From: Entomortierella parvispora E1425
Taxonomy: Eukaryota; Fungi; Mortierellomycota
Assembly: GCA_020891255.1 (NCBI GenBank)
Contig: BQFW01000017.1
Location: forward strand, 1 to 64,000
DNA length: 64,000 nt
Reading direction: 5' to 3'
Under the pieces are notes generated by a model. It did not search any database and was not told where the DNA came from. It was given only the letters and a program-made list of their open reading frames with translations. Of this stretch, positions 4,491 to 10,839 are shown piece after piece. The stretch's first letter is position 1, and each line of letters opens with the position of its first letter. The position numbers were made by a program, and so were the translations under genes.

Positions 4491-5778
4491 ATGAAAATCA
4501 CGATTACTTCTGCCCTTCTCTGCTTGGCTGCCACCTCCCGCCGTCGCGGACCAGAAGGCTCAAATCCCCCAAAGGCTGAACTCTGACGCTGTCGATCACC
4601 GCCACCATGAAATCAATGCCGCAGAATTGGCCCAATATCGCCCGTTGGGTGTGATGCGCCATGAATACCAAGTTCAAACGAGCAGCAGCAGCAGTCACCG
4701 CGATCATCACTACGACGAGGAGGAGGATGACGGTAAGGATCATTCTCACCATCGCCACGACAACGACGAGGAGGATGATGACCATGAGGAGGATGATGAC
4801 CATGAGGAGAGGGACCATGATGATGACCATGAGGAGAAGGACGAAGAGGAGAAGCACCACAAGAGCCATCATGACGAGGAAGAGGACGATGATGAGCACG
4901 AAGGTGCCAAGAAGAAAGGCACTGACGACAAGAAGGACCACGAGGAGCATAAAACTAGCAAGAAAGGAGGACATTCCAAAGATGATGGCAAGAAGGACGA
5001 CAGTGAGAGGAAGGATGGCACTGGGAAGAAGGGAGGCGATGCTGACAGCAAGACTGTTGATGAAGTGAAGGACAAGAAGAAGGGTACCGAGACCTCCCCT
5101 GCATTGGCGGATGGGTCTTCCAAGACGACCAGCAAACCCGGACAGGCTACCATGCCCACGGCTGGCACGACCTCCAACACTGCGCCTTTATGGCTCGTGC
5201 AGCCTTTCGGTGCCTCTGTTTGGGAGCAGGGTAGGACTTACGTTATTAGCTGGGGACCCAACCCCGACCCCATCTTCACCGAGGGATTCAAGCCCAAGAC
5301 ACCCGTTAATGTCCACCTCATGCAAGGCCCCCACGACAACTTGCTTGAGGTTGCTGTTCTCAAGGCGGCTATGGACTCCTCATTGAATTCGTTGCAGTGG
5401 ACCGTGCCCGCAACTCTGGCTCCCTCAAAGGATTATTCTATCCGTCTGTCACACGAAGGCGATCTCGATACATATTCTCACTATTTCGAGGTCTCCGAGA
5501 AGGGTGATCCCCGATCCACAAAGTCCAACGTCGGCGAGCCTTTGCAAATGCCTCAAAAGACAGCAGATATGGGTACCACTCTTCCAAAAGGCGCGATTAA
5601 CAAGCCTGCTGCACCACCAAATCCCTTCCCTGCTGAGAAGACTGTGGCTGCGAAACCCGCGGTCACCAAGCCAGCAATGCATTCCTCGGCAAACTTGGGC
5701 GTGCCAGGTGAATCCCGTCAGGGTGCAAACATGATGGCTCTTGCCATGGCTCTCTTCGGTGCCGTTTACTTTTTGTAA
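4491..5778 (+). CDS. Secreted/GPI-anchored protein: His/Asp/Glu-rich N-terminal region plus Kre9/Knh1-like (Ser-Thr-rich GPI family) Ig-like domain; one extra C after the signal peptide
   Basis: ATG 4491 encodes signal peptide MKITITSALLCLAATS. Removing one C from CCC 4537-4539 joins it to ORF 4627-5778 (SAVADQKAQ...). Domain WLVQPFGASVWEQGRTYVISW...LQWTVPATL..SKDYSIRL...YSHYFEV; hydrophobic C-terminal tail MMALAMALFGAVYFL preceded by small residues. Confidence 0.75.
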
Positions 5779-6185
5779 ATGATCATCCTACACCCATGAA
5801 GACATTGAGGACGGTAATGATTCTTCCGCCTCTCCGTTTTGTATCAAGAATAACTCCTGACCGTCCAGTCTTTCACATGTATATTATAACCTCTGGCACT
5901 CTATTATTTTCCAGCCGAACAATAAAAGCGGCTTCACTTCCAAGTCCTTCGTTTCAAGAAGTTTTCATTTAAATTTGTTTCGCAGTAGGCGATTTGATTT
6001 GATCGTCTTTTTTTTGCCATTAGATCGTAAGGCAGGCTGGTATGCAGTGGAGATTGGAGTCGTCCCAGAGGGTAAGTCCAAGTACGTCGGGATGAGATGC
6101 TGTTGATATGCATTGCGTTGTCGAGGGTCGTTGCCATCCTGAATGAGGACTACAGCGAAAAATTGCCGTTTCACTGATGTCCAGT

Positions 6186-7039
6186 CTACTTCTTCTTCAA
6201 AAGCGAGGTCAAGATTATGGTGCCAATGGCTACGGCACTTCCTACAATGGCCATGCCAATATAACCCTCTAATTTTTTTTTAAAAAAAAAAGAAACCGAC
6301 GGGGGTAGGAAAAAGGAAGAAAAGAGTTAGTGACAACCATACACACCATTGATCCACAACTGCTCATAATGACACATGACGTTTACCCTTGGCGACACGG
6401 TCCTCAATCTCCTGGCGAAGGGCGTGTGCCTGAGAGTTGTTGGGCTCGAATTCCAGCAGCGACTCGTTAAACTTGCGAGCATCGTTGTAGTTGCCGAGCT
6501 TGAAATGACCCAGAGCAAGGTAAAAGAGGCACTCACGTCTCCTGTCCGGGACCTCGCGATAGATATCTATGGATTGCGAGGCAAGCACAAAGAAAGAGGG
6601 TGAGTTGGAAAGTCGTTCCCGAACAATTGAGCAGAAAAAGTGACATCGGTGTCCAACAGTTCCCGACGGATTAAACATGTCGACTCTTGGCAGTTTTGCT
6701 GTGCCTTTCTGAGCCGTACCTGTAAGAAGAAGGACTCCCTGGGTTTGCTCACGTCTGTTCTTGCTCTTGATCAAGCCCCAGGCGTAGTTGAAGCGGGTCT
6801 GCTCAGTGACATACTCGCCCTCTCTGATGTATTGCTTCTTCAGAACCTATAGGATACGCAAAGGGTATGACATTGGTTAAGAGAACTCGGTTGAATGACA
6901 GCATGGACAATAGACGCATGGGCACTTGGAATGTGGCTGAATCGATCCGACGCGACTTTGGCGAGTAATGTACCTCAAGCTGGCTGTCGGAGAGGCAGCT
7001 ATCGGCGTCTGCCATGCTAGGAAGGTTGTTATCGGTCAT
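6186..7039 (-). CDS. FIS1: Mitochondrial fission protein Fis1 (4 exons)
   Basis: QTRFNYAWGLIKS, RRRECLFYLALGHFKLGNY and tail anchor GYIGMAIVGSAVAIGTIILTSLLKKK*. The reconstructed introns are GT-AG. Confidence 0.96.
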
Positions 7040-7146
7040 GCTGAGGAAGAGGAAGAGATGAATGTAAACGGAAAGAGAAAAGCGAAGGAATAAAGCGGGC
7101 AGGATTGTCGACCATGCAGAGACATGGCGACAGAAAGAATAGTCGG

Positions 7147-7156
7147 GTCACGTGAT
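7147..7156. promoter_or_regulatory. E-box (GTCACGTGAT) in the FIS1/CBP4 divergent promoter
   Basis: CACGTG at 7149-7154, centred in a 244-bp head-to-head intergenic region. Confidence 0.4.
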
Positions 7157-7283
7157 CATCCCAAAAAGGAAACTTGCTCGGAGAGACGTCTTTGCTCTGC
7201 TGATCTGGCGCATCCATGCTGCCATTCGTCCTCCTCGTCTCTTCCTCTGCTCTTTACACCACACCACATTCACACCAGCAAAC

Positions 7284-7691
7284 ATGGGCAACTATCCTAA
7301 AGCATTCGCCGTCGGCTTTGGCATCGTCGGTCTCGGCTACGCTCTCATGGTCACAACTGTGCCAACAGAGGAGCAGCTGTACCAGGTGCGACTCGTAGAT
7401 TATTGACACACAAATGCAACCAATGCAAACAGAGATCCGAACCAGTCCATGCTTCCGGATGCAGCGCAACCGTGTGAATTTTCCTGGGCGACAAACTAAA
7501 ACTGAACGTGCATGCTGTTTTTGTGAAAATAGAAACTCTCCCCCGAGCTCAAGAAGCAGTACGAGGTAGTCAAGGCTGACCAAGCGCGCCGTGAGGCTTT
7601 CTCGGATGTGCTCAAGCGTGCCGCTGCTGACCCAGAGCCAATGTGGATCAAGAAGAAGACCCCTGCTCCGGAGTCACCAAAGGCTCAATAG
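7284..7691 (+). CDS. CBP4: Cytochrome bc1 assembly factor Cbp4-like (2 exons)
   Basis: MGNYPKAFAVGFGIVGLGYALMVTTVPTEEQLYQ|KLSPELKKQYE...AAADPEPMW: single N-terminal TM, then PTEEQL..LSPEL and PxW motifs typical of Cbp4. Confidence 0.75.
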
Positions 7692-9540
7692 ATCCAATTC
7701 TCTTATCCTTGCCCATCCAACCCCGGGCGCCTTGTACTTTAGTCTCTCCCTCATGCATTCTATTCAGTAAAAGCACGACGATCACGTCGGCAACAAAAAA
7801 AAAAAAAAAAACTTACAACGCGGCTTCCACTCCCTGTGCACGCAAATCAGATTCCTCAGACAACATGGGCTTCTCACCTTGTACATGTACATGTACACGT
7901 AACTCTATGGATAGCCCGTTTGCGAGAGAAAGGAGAGCGTAGGGTCATTGTTGTGGAAGTTTCATTTTCACTTGAGAGAGGAAGAGTTTGCAATACCCAC
8001 TTTGTTCACCTTCTTGAGAATTAGCATGCATCCTTTCCACGATCTGCGCCTATGTTTCCCCTCACGTCTTTGTTCTGCATTAGCCTTCACACATTTACAG
8101 CATCGGCCAAACCTTCAACTCACCACAGCTCGATATCACTATGAAGCGTGCATCACACGAGCGGCTTTCTATGGCACGTTGATAGCAGGAGCAGAAAGAA
8201 GCAGAGGAAGGAGAGGAGACGTCGTCCGGGTGGCAGCGCACTTGGTTACTTACGAATTTAGTTCTTTCCGATGTCGCCGTAAACCTCAAGTGCATGCTAA
8301 TATGCACGCAAACGTTCAATGATATTATGTCGGGGAAGGCCATGGTACTCCAATTAGTCTCTGTTGTCTCGACCTGCTGCTCGTCTGCAGTGCCTTCGAG
8401 AGTAATCGTTATTGGCGATATTCTCCGTTTTTCCTTTTCCTTCAAGCTTCTAGTACTCAGTCAGAGAGGCGGATGATATGCTGGGAGACAACATTTCTTG
8501 GAAGAGCAACAAGAAGTAGATGATCGACTTGGAGCACCTAGCAGTCGATCGGCAATGACAGGGCGAGACCTCTAGATTCGAGGGCAGAAGGTCATTACTC
8601 GCAGCTGGGCCCAGACTCTAGATCTCCACTCTCATTATCGCTGGCTGTGGTGTTGTACAGGTACAGTGTTGTTGTGAGACCGCAGTCTGCCTGTTGCACC
8701 CTAACTTCTACTGGAGTTTTGTTCATTCCATTGAGGTAACACAATGCGAAAGAAAACACGCGAGCGAGCGGAAAGCAACTGACATTCCTACAACCCCCAT
8801 AAACCTCACTAGCTCCATCTCTGGTCTGGAAAGCAAGATGAACCTTTCGCCGTTCCTCGTCTGGTCCCGAGTCAAAAGCTATCTGCGCAGAGCCTCTCTT
8901 GTTCTTTTTTCTTCTGTAGGACAATGCAGGTCCAGGGGCGACAGTTGCACAAAGAAACCCCGTCCACGTTGTTAAGAACTTGAGAAGGAGACTATTCAAA
9001 CGACGGTTTATACTTTTATAGGTTTACTCTGTGCAATGAGATGGGAAAAGCCTCAGGTTCGTGTACCTCTTGTGCCTTGCTGAGCAGTTAGGGTGGGGTT
9101 TTGCATGGGAAAAAATAAGGCAGCGGACATTAAGTGTCCCTGATGTGTTGCTCACCAAGAAAGAGATGCAAACTACTGTAGAGAGGATGCAGGATGGGTG
9201 GCGGGGATGAGAAACCACAGCGGGATGACTAAAAAAGGTAAAGGGTTCCAGGAATGGCGTCAGAATGGATCATGCCACAAAGGTATTAGAGGGCGTAATC
9301 AGAAAGAGGCGTGAGAGCGAAGGCCCTGTATTCATCTGGTGCGACAGTGATTATGATGGCAGCCAGAGGAGCCGCCTGCACAAGTTAAAAAGAAAAAGCC
9401 CTGCCTGCCAGCGTTGCCACGCGTCCTGTGGTGAAACACGACTTTACCCGATCCTGAACAAGACTTCTCAATTGACATAATCTACCTAATAAAGAGGAGT
9501 GGGTCGTCGTCTTTATTTTTTTTTCTCAGGGATCAAGGAG

Positions 9541-10025
9541 TTATCAGATTGAAAATTAGAAGTCCTTCATTTTCTGGTCCCGCAACATCCCGGGAACGGC
9601 GAATGGGGCTAATCAGATTGAAAGAAAGGGATGTCTGCAGTTTGTTGAGATGTGCAGTCGTCCCAGCGCGTGTCCCGGGTAAGTGAACAGGAACATGAGA
9701 GCCCGACATAGAAAGTTGACGCCAACGGTCAAAAAAAAAAAAAAAAAAAGAGACGCGGGTCCATTGGCGGAGTGAGTTTATCGTACTTCAGAAAACAAGG
9801 AAGGGTCTATCCCACGGGTTGCTTCAAAGTAGCCACCCAAGCTTGCTTCTGAGCAGTTATCAGATCGAAAGAGGCAGCATTCAAGCCCAGACAAGTGTAC
9901 TGTAATTCTTTAGCTCTATATCCCGGGTGAGGGTGAGGTTATCAGATCGAAAACGTGAAAGGTCCAGGCCTTGAGTTACGAAGAAGGCAGTTGTGAGGTC
10001 GAGGCATTTCACGAGGATCTGATAA
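9541..10025. promoter_or_regulatory. Cluster of iron-responsive GATA-repressor (SreA/Sre1/Fep1-type) sites, ATCWGATAA
   Basis: TTATCAGAT at 9541-9549, 9857-9865 and 9939-9947, ATCTGATAA at 10017-10025, and variant TAATCAGAT at 9610-9618. The four forward copies are followed by YGAAA. Confidence 0.8.
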
Positions 10026-10257: not shown

Positions 10258-10264
10258 TATATAA
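10258..10264 (+). promoter_or_regulatory. TATA box of the small secreted protein gene
   Basis: TATATAA about 95 bp upstream of ATG 10359, followed by a CT-rich tract typical of fungal start regions. Confidence 0.6.
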
Positions 10265-10358
10265 GCAGCCTCGCCAATGCCTCATTTTCTTGTCCTCCAT
10301 CCTCTTCCACTCTTCCATTTCTCAACAACCCAACCCAACCCACCCAGCTCTCACCGCA

Positions 10359-10839
10359 ATGCGTTTCTCTGCCGCTGTCGTCCTCGCCTCCTTGGCTGCC
10401 TTCGTCACTGCTGCTCCTGTCAGCAAGGCTGTTCAGTCTGAGTACTTCCCCTTCACCCCTGAGGGTCCCTGCGTCTCCGCATGCACCAACGTAAAGTTCA
10501 TTCTGGCGTTCTCTATCAGTGCTGCCATGAAAATGAAATAGGACCCTGATGAACACTTTCTGACCACCCTTCTCCACTTTATCAAAACAATAATAGTCCG
10601 TTGGCAAGTCCCTCTTCGTGAACTACGATGACCTCGACTCGTACGGTCCCAACTTCATCCAGTCGCTCAGCTACACTTTCGAGCGCGGTTCGCCCACCAC
10701 CATCTCCTTCATGACCAAGGCCGGTACCTGCATGTCCACCTGCCCCCAGCCCGAGTTGGACATCTACACCGCCAACTACCCCCTCAAGTTGACCTGGTAC
10801 AAGGCCCACAAGCTCGACACTCCTCCTCCCCGCCCTTAA
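10359..10839 (+). CDS. Small secreted 4-Cys protein of unknown function (124 aa; exons 10359-10490 and 10597-10839)
   Basis: Signal peptide MRFSAAVVLASLAAFVTA; in-frame GT-AG intron 10491-10596; two C-x3-C motifs (PCVSAC, TCMSTC); strong bias to C/T-ending and AAG codons. Confidence 0.9.

Follow-up and report, generated by a model that had tools for sequence, protein, structure and literature searches.

What is the task of a small secreted protein with only four cysteines, whose gene is preceded by a dense array of iron-type GATA sites? This question is raised by EMPS_03492, a two-exon gene on the plus strand of Entomortierella parvispora (GenBank GCA_020891255.1), which lies in the 64-kb stretch of DNA analysed here (contig BQFW01000017.1, positions 1 to 64,000; hereafter called the window). 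An earlier description of the locus, made from the DNA letters alone and referred to below as the sequence-only reading, had proposed a non-CFEM haemophore, a siderophore-binding protein or an iron-competition effector. We propose that the product is a secreted, soluble CFEM-like protein that serves as an iron-repressed carrier of an extracellular iron source, probably haem, and we give this proposal slightly better than an even chance. The family to which it belongs is quite likely a divergent branch of the CFEM superfamily that has fewer disulfides and an enlarged, conserved loop between the third and fourth CFEM cysteine positions (Cys3 and Cys4).

Protein family and relation to the CFEM domain

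The gene encodes a product of 124 residues. Cysteines occur at positions 38, 42, 89 and 93 and nowhere else, forming two CX3C motifs; tyrosines are found at positions 29, 54, 60, 70, 101, 105 and 112, the sole histidine at 115, and an acidic DDLDSY stretch at 55–60. The C-terminus ends in PPPRP and has neither a hydrophobic tail nor a glycosylphosphatidylinositol (GPI) signal, which indicates a soluble protein. All of these features match the sequence-only reading to the residue. The signal peptide that it had proposed is supported by the hydrophobic N-terminus (mean Kyte–Doolittle value of 2.1 for residues 3–19, as compared to −0.4 for the remainder) and by the alignment with the signal peptides of homologues; the call was made from these two observations. 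Its strong codon bias is likewise borne out, as the G+C and C contents at third codon positions are 0.80 and 0.61 in the gene, well above the 0.57 ± 0.06 and 0.31 ± 0.07 of 23 long open reading frames (ORFs) of the window, and the TATA box is present upstream (Table 1).

The deposited EMPS_03492 model comprises only 108 residues, ending in ...ANYPSS, and removes as a second “intron” the end of the conserved C-terminal helix and the tail. Because the homologues of Actinomortierella, E. beljakovae, Podila and other fungi continue through a conserved C-terminal tail (KLxWY..NK...PPPRP or RRRRL), the 124-residue model, which reads through to the stop codon at 10837–10839, is, as judged from these sequences, better than the GenBank model. 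The position of the intron between exons 1 and 2 is common to the A. wolfii, L. elongata and Lobosporangium homologues. The comparison supports the view that the window gene encodes a real, conserved, secreted small protein.

How widespread is this protein? With a profile of six Mortierellaceae sequences, a word-index search retrieved 49 proteins, and an exhaustive search of 1.8 billion proteins retrieved 91 representatives of 50%-identity clusters. The members come from at least ten Mortierellaceae genera, many Mucorales (Rhizopus, Mucor, Radiomyces, Dichotomocladium, Cunninghamella, Apophysomyces, Circinella, Zychaea, Backusella, Gilbertella and Sporodiniella), Umbelopsis, Basidiobolus and Malassezia pachydermatis. 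The hypothetical Mucoromycota proteins with the same motifs, which the sequence-only reading had mentioned, do exist. No paper turned up in a literature search for the members' locus tags and UniProt accessions. Among 61 single-domain members, the four cysteines and Ser67 are invariant, and Gly47, Asp58, Pro62, Phe64, Leu68, Phe82, Met83, Gly87 and Trp111 are nearly so; position 58 is Asp in 52 of them and Asn in the other nine. His115, Tyr29 and Tyr60 of the window protein are not conserved in the family.

The architectures range from soluble proteins of about 115–125 residues, through many members with a Ser/Thr/Pro-rich stalk and a GPI-type hydrophobic tail, to proteins with two to six tandem domains, some of them GPI-like-tailed (e.g., L. 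exigua BGZ95_002622). Some Basidiobolus family proteins end in a CBM_19-like chitin-binding tail. Several family genes are neighbours: in L. exigua, the consecutive tags BGZ95_002621 and BGZ95_002622 denote a soluble protein and the six-domain, GPI-like-tailed one, an arrangement that recalls the soluble-plus-anchored CFEM relay. Five tandem copies of 113–124 residues, with six cysteines and 90–100% identity, are found in Basidiobolus meristosporus, and L. elongata and Podila horticola have a divergent and a tandem family pair, respectively, in which each gene has its own iron-type GATA sites.

The relation to CFEM emerges from Basidiobolus. A profile built from Mortierellaceae sequences alone matches Basidiobolus ranarum P0072 with an E-value of 1e-18, and hhalign aligns the Mortierellaceae with the Basidiobolus-clade alignment over 95 columns (probability 98.6%, E 1.2e-15). 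P0072 has two domains, each with eight cysteines in the pattern C-x3-C-x7-C-x18-CxC-x16-C-x4-C-x15/16-C. This is the CFEM order including the CxC motif, with longer C3–C4 and C5–C6 gaps, as compared to the CFEM pattern PxC[A/G]x2Cx8-12Cx1-3[x/T]Dx2-5CxCx9-14Cx3-4Cx15-16C (PMC13586796). The second domain (residues 169–232) scores 23.1 bits against Pfam CFEM (PF05730), slightly above the gathering score of 22, and the first domain scores 11.7 bits. Moreover, three other Basidiobolus members are named CFEM in UniRef.

On the hhalign-based mapping, the four cysteines of the window protein occupy the positions of CFEM Cys1, Cys2, Cys6 and Cys7, and hydrophobic residues or tyrosine occupy the others (Table 1). 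The Mucorales members have eight cysteines in a non-CFEM spacing: they retain Cys5 and Cys8, have no Cys3 or Cys4, and carry one extra cysteine at each end, N-terminal and C-terminal. Two Basidiobolus proteins also lack both Cys3 and Cys4. Read through this mapping, the cysteines are lost in pairs, Cys3 with Cys4 and Cys5 with Cys8, as expected if the disulfides are 3–4, 5–8 and 1/2 with 6/7. The loss of exactly Cys3 and Cys4, or of Cys1 and Cys7, has been described in genuine CFEM proteins (PMC9684206).

The window protein is not a CFEM member as currently defined, because it has neither the eight-cysteine spacing, with four cysteines only, nor a score at the Pfam threshold: the window exon 2, the Mortierellaceae and the Mucorales members do not reach the 22-bit gathering score of PF05730 and give no CFEM match. 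The label “non-CFEM” of the sequence-only reading therefore holds for the cysteine pattern and fails for the ancestry, since the protein is homologous to eight-cysteine Basidiobolus proteins, one of which exceeds the Pfam CFEM cut-off, and CFEM is its closest fold. The other Pfam matches of the window protein and 51 relatives (Fer4 through CxxxCP, Big defensin and PAN) were at chance level and were rejected.

Which residue could hold a ligand? In Csa2 of Candida albicans, the haem-ligating residue is Asp80. In the mapping, D58 falls between the positions of Cys3 and Cys4. This interval holds, in CFEM haemophores, the axial Asp that ligates the haem iron (PMC13586796), and we infer that D58 is its equivalent. 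Asp58, inside the DDLDSY stretch of the sequence-only reading, is the candidate that is conserved, and most of the ligands suggested there do not hold: His115, Tyr29 and Tyr60 vary in the family, and Tyr70 is probably a core residue rather than a ligand, because it replaces CFEM Cys4.

The shape matches of the predicted structures, though weak, point in the same direction. AlphaFold models on the family alignments reached a predicted local distance difference test score of 88 for E. beljakovae P0003 and 93 for an eight-cysteine member, and both consist of four long helices. The CFEM fold of Csa2 (PDB 4Y7S) is a helical basket of six helices and four disulfides. In Foldseek searches of the AFDB clusters, the weak matches beyond the family were dominated by CFEM proteins (probability up to 0.94, template-modelling (TM) scores of 0.45–0.54), and the top TM scores among Swiss-Prot folds (0.44–0.50) belonged to CFEM effectors. 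The first non-family row of an ESM-Atlas shape search was a pure CFEM cluster (TM 0.55 over 76 residues, root-mean-square deviation 3.1). Against the PDB, Foldseek returned nothing significant for either model, and the best VIA-align Z among 48,161 chains was only 4.2–4.3; therefore, nothing closely similar has been solved. PDB sequence matches to antibody light chains, a pectinesterase and a dehydrogenase, all with E > 0.05, were rejected as chance. The profile and fold searches, which the sequence-only reading had named as ways to place the protein, thereby lead to a family with a CFEM link through Basidiobolus and to CFEM as the closest predicted fold, with nothing in the PDB.

Iron-type promoter and transporter partner

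How is the gene controlled? The 9-mer ATCWGATAA was defined by its enrichment among the SreA-regulated genes of A. fumigatus, a set that plain HGATAR does not discriminate, and it fits the experimentally proven sites of S. pombe Fep1 and U. maydis Urbs1 (PMC2610380). The 64-kb window contains four exact matches, as compared to 1.13 expected, and all four lie at 9541–10025, 335–818 bp upstream of the ATG. With an additional one-mismatch copy, they form the SreA-type array that the sequence-only reading had noticed. Between 7060 and 9500, there is no divergent gene able to own the array, as the ORFs of this stretch are short and odd in composition and Rfam gives no match. The next annotated gene upstream is Fis1 on the minus strand (about 6207–7059). 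Since the interval from Fis1 to the array offers neither a convincing ORF nor a match in Rfam, the array belongs to EMPS_03492. Four of the five GATA copies share a longer form, TTATCAGATYGAAA (window 9535–9960), so that the unit exceeds the 9-mer; the factor may recognise a wider site, or a short block of the promoter may have been duplicated. The copies are interrupted by 20 consecutive A at about 9731–9750.

Exact sites recur in promoters of homologues. We fetched the loci of eleven further species and counted exact ATCWGATAA 9-mers, using 8.5-kb loci for the species that bear sites. Eight further Mucoromycota species have two to five exact sites upstream of the homologues (Table 1), and the motif occurs nowhere else in their 8.5-kb loci apart from sites ahead of paralogues. 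Pooled with the window, ten 1.5-kb upstream regions contain 26 exact sites, as compared to five in about 128 kb elsewhere; without R. delemar, the numbers are 23 in 13.5 kb upstream and five in 121 kb, or 1.7 and 0.04 per kb. All five sites elsewhere lie upstream of paralogues. The E. beljakovae locus has no site, in an upstream sequence of only 473 bp. The recurrence of the motif upstream of homologues, which the sequence-only reading had named as a point to be checked, is thus borne out in these eight Mucoromycota species. Rhizopus has SreA homologues (PMC12638772). The conserved motif strongly suggests that the promoter is iron-responsive and that the gene is repressed by iron in Mucoromycota.

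The family gene also has a conserved neighbour. In Radiomyces, R. stolonifer and Umbelopsis, it divergently adjoins a major facilitator superfamily (MFS) transporter of the MFS_1 type, with the GATA sites in the intergenic region between the two genes. These three MFS proteins are orthologues of one another (53–54% identity), and more than 25 genera of Mucorales and Umbelopsis have an orthologue. The adjacency is confirmed by consecutive locus tags in Apophysomyces and Umbelopsis; in further species, both genes lie on equal-sized contigs, which is compatible with linkage. RO3G_11245 of the reference mucormycosis strain has no MFS gene within 4 kb, and is a paralogue outside the transporter pair. 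The paired MFS has no PDB sequence match, its look-alikes are generic MFS proteins, and no characterised subfamily could be assigned; by language-model features, it resembles drug or TetA-type carriers with 12 transmembrane helices.

Malassezia pachydermatis has the same divergent pair, flanked by lipase genes typical of Malassezia. A maximum-likelihood tree places the Malassezia transporters within the Mucoromycotina-type clade, where they form a basal polytomy with Umbelopsis, and the nearest other Dikarya matches are far off (24–29% identity). The two-gene module of Malassezia may derive from an old horizontal transfer, or from deep retention with many losses.

Possible function and alternatives

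How might the protein work? We envisage a single-domain, soluble member of an unnamed and very divergent CFEM branch, widespread in Mortierellomycotina, Mucoromycotina and Basidiobolus. It would fold into a compact bundle of four long helices, presumably stapled by the disulfides C38–C93 (CFEM Cys1–Cys7) and C42–C89 (Cys2–Cys6), and the remaining two CFEM disulfides would be replaced by the hydrophobic pairs L50/Y70 and F72/L109. In iron-replete cells, a SreA/Fep1-type GATA factor on the four-site ATCWGATAA array would most probably repress the gene, and iron starvation would lead to abundant production and secretion. Outside the wall, the protein would most probably capture an iron source, with Asp58 as the candidate axial ligand; haem is the first candidate because it is the documented CFEM ligand and D58 is conserved at the presumed axial-Asp position. 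By analogy with the Candida relay of Csa2, Rbt5 and Pga7, the cargo could then be handed over either to a membrane transporter or to cell-surface paralogues, which have GPI-type tails and stalks rich in Ser and Thr; in Mucoromycotina, the receiving transporter may be the divergently paired MFS. A wider proposal is that the family and its paired MFS form a previously unknown, iron-repressed uptake pathway of the Mucoromycota, in which a CFEM-derived carrier of haem or ferric rhizoferrin feeds a dedicated MFS importer, and that this module predates the Dikarya and was mobile enough to reach Malassezia; we hold this to be possible and rather doubtful.

The closest comparison is with the CFEM haemophores of Candida albicans, the soluble Csa2 and the GPI-anchored Rbt5 and Pga7. 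Both families are extracellular, with a signal peptide and a small, disulfide-stapled helical domain, and both include soluble, GPI-anchored and multi-domain members; the cysteine order is the same in the Basidiobolus relatives, and a conserved Asp lies between Cys3 and Cys4. Control by iron starvation is established for CFEM haemophores and predicted for the window family. In contrast, the window protein has four cysteines rather than eight and a domain of about 90 rather than about 60 residues, with an inserted, conserved loop (D-x-x-x-P-x-F-I-x-S-L); Pfam CFEM matches no family member outside Basidiobolus; and the membrane partner in Mucoromycotina is of the MFS class, where Candida relies on Frp1/Frp2 together with endocytosis. 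The FIT1-3 proteins of S. cerevisiae are secreted or GPI-anchored wall mannoproteins that are induced by Aft1 upon iron starvation and retain iron chelate near the transporters; unlike the window protein, they are repetitive and Ser/Thr-rich, without a folded Cys-stapled domain, and have no sequence or fold relation to it. Two CX3C motifs on antiparallel helices, joined by two disulfides, are also the hallmark of the small Tims (Tim9/Tim10), chaperones of about 10 kDa in the mitochondrial intermembrane space with 11–16 residues between the motifs and no signal peptide. This identity was rejected, as the window protein has a signal peptide, 46 residues between its CX3C motifs and no match to Pfam zf-Tim10_DDP. 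By language-model features, the nearest cluster is the Ascomycota CAP22 family (PF28223), with a score of 0.73, well below the reliable level.

In S. pombe, the small, GPI-anchored, Cys-containing and haem-binding Shu1 is a surface protein repressed by Fep1, and the MFS haem transporter Str3 is repressed when iron is replete (bioRxiv 10.1101/2024.03.03.583214), which parallels the pairing of a surface protein with an MFS under GATA sites described here. However, Shu1 and Str3 are independent systems with no reported gene pair, and Str3 is an MFS of the siderophore iron transporter (SIT) type, unrelated to the generic MFS_1 described here. Shu1 was not among the Swiss-Prot fold matches; it is likened to the window protein by description, not by sequence.

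Several observations weigh against the proposed CFEM-like haem carrier. None of 51 alignment members from Mortierella, the Mucorales and single-domain Basidiobolus proteins matches Pfam CFEM, even at E ≤ 10; the models have four long helices and not the six of Csa2; and the equivalence of D58 with the CFEM ligand Asp derives from its position in the alignment with the Basidiobolus clade. CFEM proteins are functionally diverse (PMC13586796), and many of their roles are unrelated to haem. The exact 9-mer is absent from the 12-kb locus of the B. meristosporus tandem array, and the M. pachydermatis pair has one-mismatch copies only. In addition, no close orthologue of the paired MFS appeared among the Mortierellaceae search results, and none is present in the window.

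Could the family be an independent, new Cys-stapled helical fold, whose Basidiobolus spacing is convergent and whose function may still be related to iron? We consider this unlikely, as it conflicts with the above-cut-off Pfam match of a protein with eight cysteines in CFEM order, with CFEM as the top non-family shape match (TM 0.55) and its enrichment in two AFDB searches, with the paired cysteine losses expected of CFEM, and with an architecture that is CFEM-like throughout: a signal peptide in the window protein, and the domain, Ser/Thr stalk, GPI-like tail and tandem forms of two to six domains in the family. In a serious alternative, the cargo would be siderophore iron, the protein and its GPI-anchored paralogues holding ferric rhizoferrin or xenosiderophores in the wall and the MFS importing or exporting the chelator. 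The promoter evidence serves this alternative equally; the conserved partner belongs to the MFS and is not an endocytic or ferric-reductase-like component; its language-model resemblance to drug and TetA-type carriers is in keeping with chelator transport; and, to our knowledge, rhizoferrin transport is unassigned in Mucoromycota. We nevertheless judge it unlikely, because the paired MFS gives generic MFS_1 matches only, with no demonstrable relation to SIT transporters, and because the fold kinship leads to CFEM, with haem as the documented ligand and Asp conserved at the presumed CFEM ligand position.

A further alternative is an iron-responsive wall, adhesion or interaction protein that carries no ligand. 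The GPI-type tails, mucin-like stalks and CBM_19-like tails in the family are in line with it, as is the very strong codon bias, which suits an abundant structural protein, and CFEM proteins are of diverse function (PMC13586796), many of them acting in cell-wall integrity, appressorium formation or host immunity. A purely structural role leaves the dense and conserved iron-repressor sites, the transporter pairing and the conserved Asp unexplained, and we regard it as unlikely, though to be taken seriously. Finally, the sites might be bound by another GATA factor, for instance one of the nitrogen type (AreA/Nit2-like), in which case the gene would not be iron-regulated. GATA zinc-finger families are indeed expanded in Mucoromycota and Mortierellomycota (PMC12638772). 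However, the sites match the extended ATCWGATAA, and it is this 9-mer, not HGATAR, that marks the SreA regulon (PMC2610380), which renders this explanation very improbable.

What would the CFEM-like carrier mean? According to published surveys, CFEM is absent from “Zygomycota” and arose in the ancestor shared by Ascomycota and Basidiomycota (PMC4530338), and a review of iron in Mucorales discusses CFEM for Candida only and states that haem use is yet to be demonstrated in Mucorales (PMC7693903). The putative CFEM ancestry, the series of cysteine losses, the conserved Asp and the transporter pairing are, as read from the sequences, new here. A reduced-cysteine CFEM branch across Mortierellomycotina, Mucoromycotina and Basidiobolus would push this origin deeper, and the family would show a four-disulfide domain shedding its disulfides pair by pair. 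If the wider proposal of an ancient uptake pathway is true, the published dating of CFEM to that ancestor is wrong, and the agents of mucormycosis (e.g., R. delemar with RO3G_11245) would have a haem-acquisition route that is so far undemonstrated. The iron-repressor sites in R. delemar and R. stolonifer, together with the transporter partner, would provide named candidates for iron acquisition in mucormycosis agents and soil Mortierellaceae.

Coordinates and neighbouring features

Table 1. Features of the EMPS_03492 locus in the window, the mapping of CFEM cysteines onto its product, and the corresponding sites and gene pairs in other species (site positions relative to the ATG unless stated otherwise; L numbers denote the fetched loci)
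Feature	Position	Strand	Remarks
Exact iron-repressor GATA site	9541..9549	-	ATCTGATAA on the minus strand; TTATCAGATTGAAAA on the plus strand
One-mismatch GATA copy	9610..9618	-	TAATCAGAT, with the same GATTGAAA flank
Exact iron-repressor GATA site	9857..9865	-	TTATCAGATCGAAAG on the plus strand
Exact iron-repressor GATA site	9939..9947	-	TTATCAGATCGAAAA on the plus strand
Exact iron-repressor GATA site, opposite orientation	10017..10025	+	ATCTGATAA
TATA box	10258..10265	+	TATATAAG; 94-101 nt ahead of the ATG
Exon 1	10359..10490	+	Residues 1-44; translates to MRFSAAVVLASLAAFVTAAPVSKAVQSEYFPFTPEGPCVSACTN; signal peptide (~1-19) and first CX3C
Predicted divergent CFEM-like four-helix domain	10443..10812	+	Residues ~29-116, split by the intron; from AlphaFold2 models of homologues, family profile and hhalign
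Intron	10491..10596	+	106 nt, GT..AG type, GTAAAG...AATAG
Exon 2	10597..10839	+	Residues 45-124 (80 residues) and stop; D58, F64, S67, second CX3C, W111, Pro-rich C-terminus
CFEM Cys1, Cys2	C38, C42		First CX3C, in exon 1; hhalign-based mapping
CFEM Cys3	L50		hhalign-based mapping
CFEM Cys4	Y70		hhalign-based mapping
CFEM Cys5	F72		hhalign-based mapping
CFEM Cys6, Cys7	C89, C93		Second CX3C, in exon 2; hhalign-based mapping
CFEM Cys8	L109		hhalign-based mapping
A. wolfii, 2 exact sites	-458, -401		
P. horticola, 3 exact sites	-1281, -1222, -784		2 more before the tandem paralogue (+1138, +1191 of the first gene)
P. horticola tandem family pair	L005:4001-4354, 5936-6310		
L. elongata, 5 exact sites			In the 3-kb intergenic region shared with the divergent paralogue
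L. elongata divergent family pair, first gene	L006:64-932	-	
L. elongata divergent family pair, second gene	L006:4001-4485		
Lobosporangium GPI-type paralogue, 2 exact sites	-1058, -439		
Radiomyces, 4 exact sites	-796, -692, -348, -159		
Radiomyces MFS / family gene divergent pair	L009:1440-4675		
R. stolonifer, 3 exact sites	-554, -497, -238		
R. stolonifer MFS / family gene divergent pair	L010:1852-4863		
Umbelopsis, 3 exact sites	-509, -215, -169		
Umbelopsis MFS / family gene divergent pair	L011:1877-4565		
M. pachydermatis MFS / family gene divergent pair	L012:3259-5573		
B. meristosporus tandem copies	L015:2343-7328		
R. delemar RA 99-880 RO3G_11245, 3 exact sites	-510, -229, -86		Gene at L016:3491-3923

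Two further features of the window lie upstream of the array. A plus-strand gene at about 4891–5799 encodes a 302-residue product with Pfam Kre9_KNH, a secreted protein family related to beta-1,6-glucan. At 7152–7406, also on the plus strand, an unannotated ORF of 84 residues has an end, MGNYPKAFAVGFGIVGLGYALMVTTVPTEEQLYQ..., that resembles a small single-pass membrane protein.

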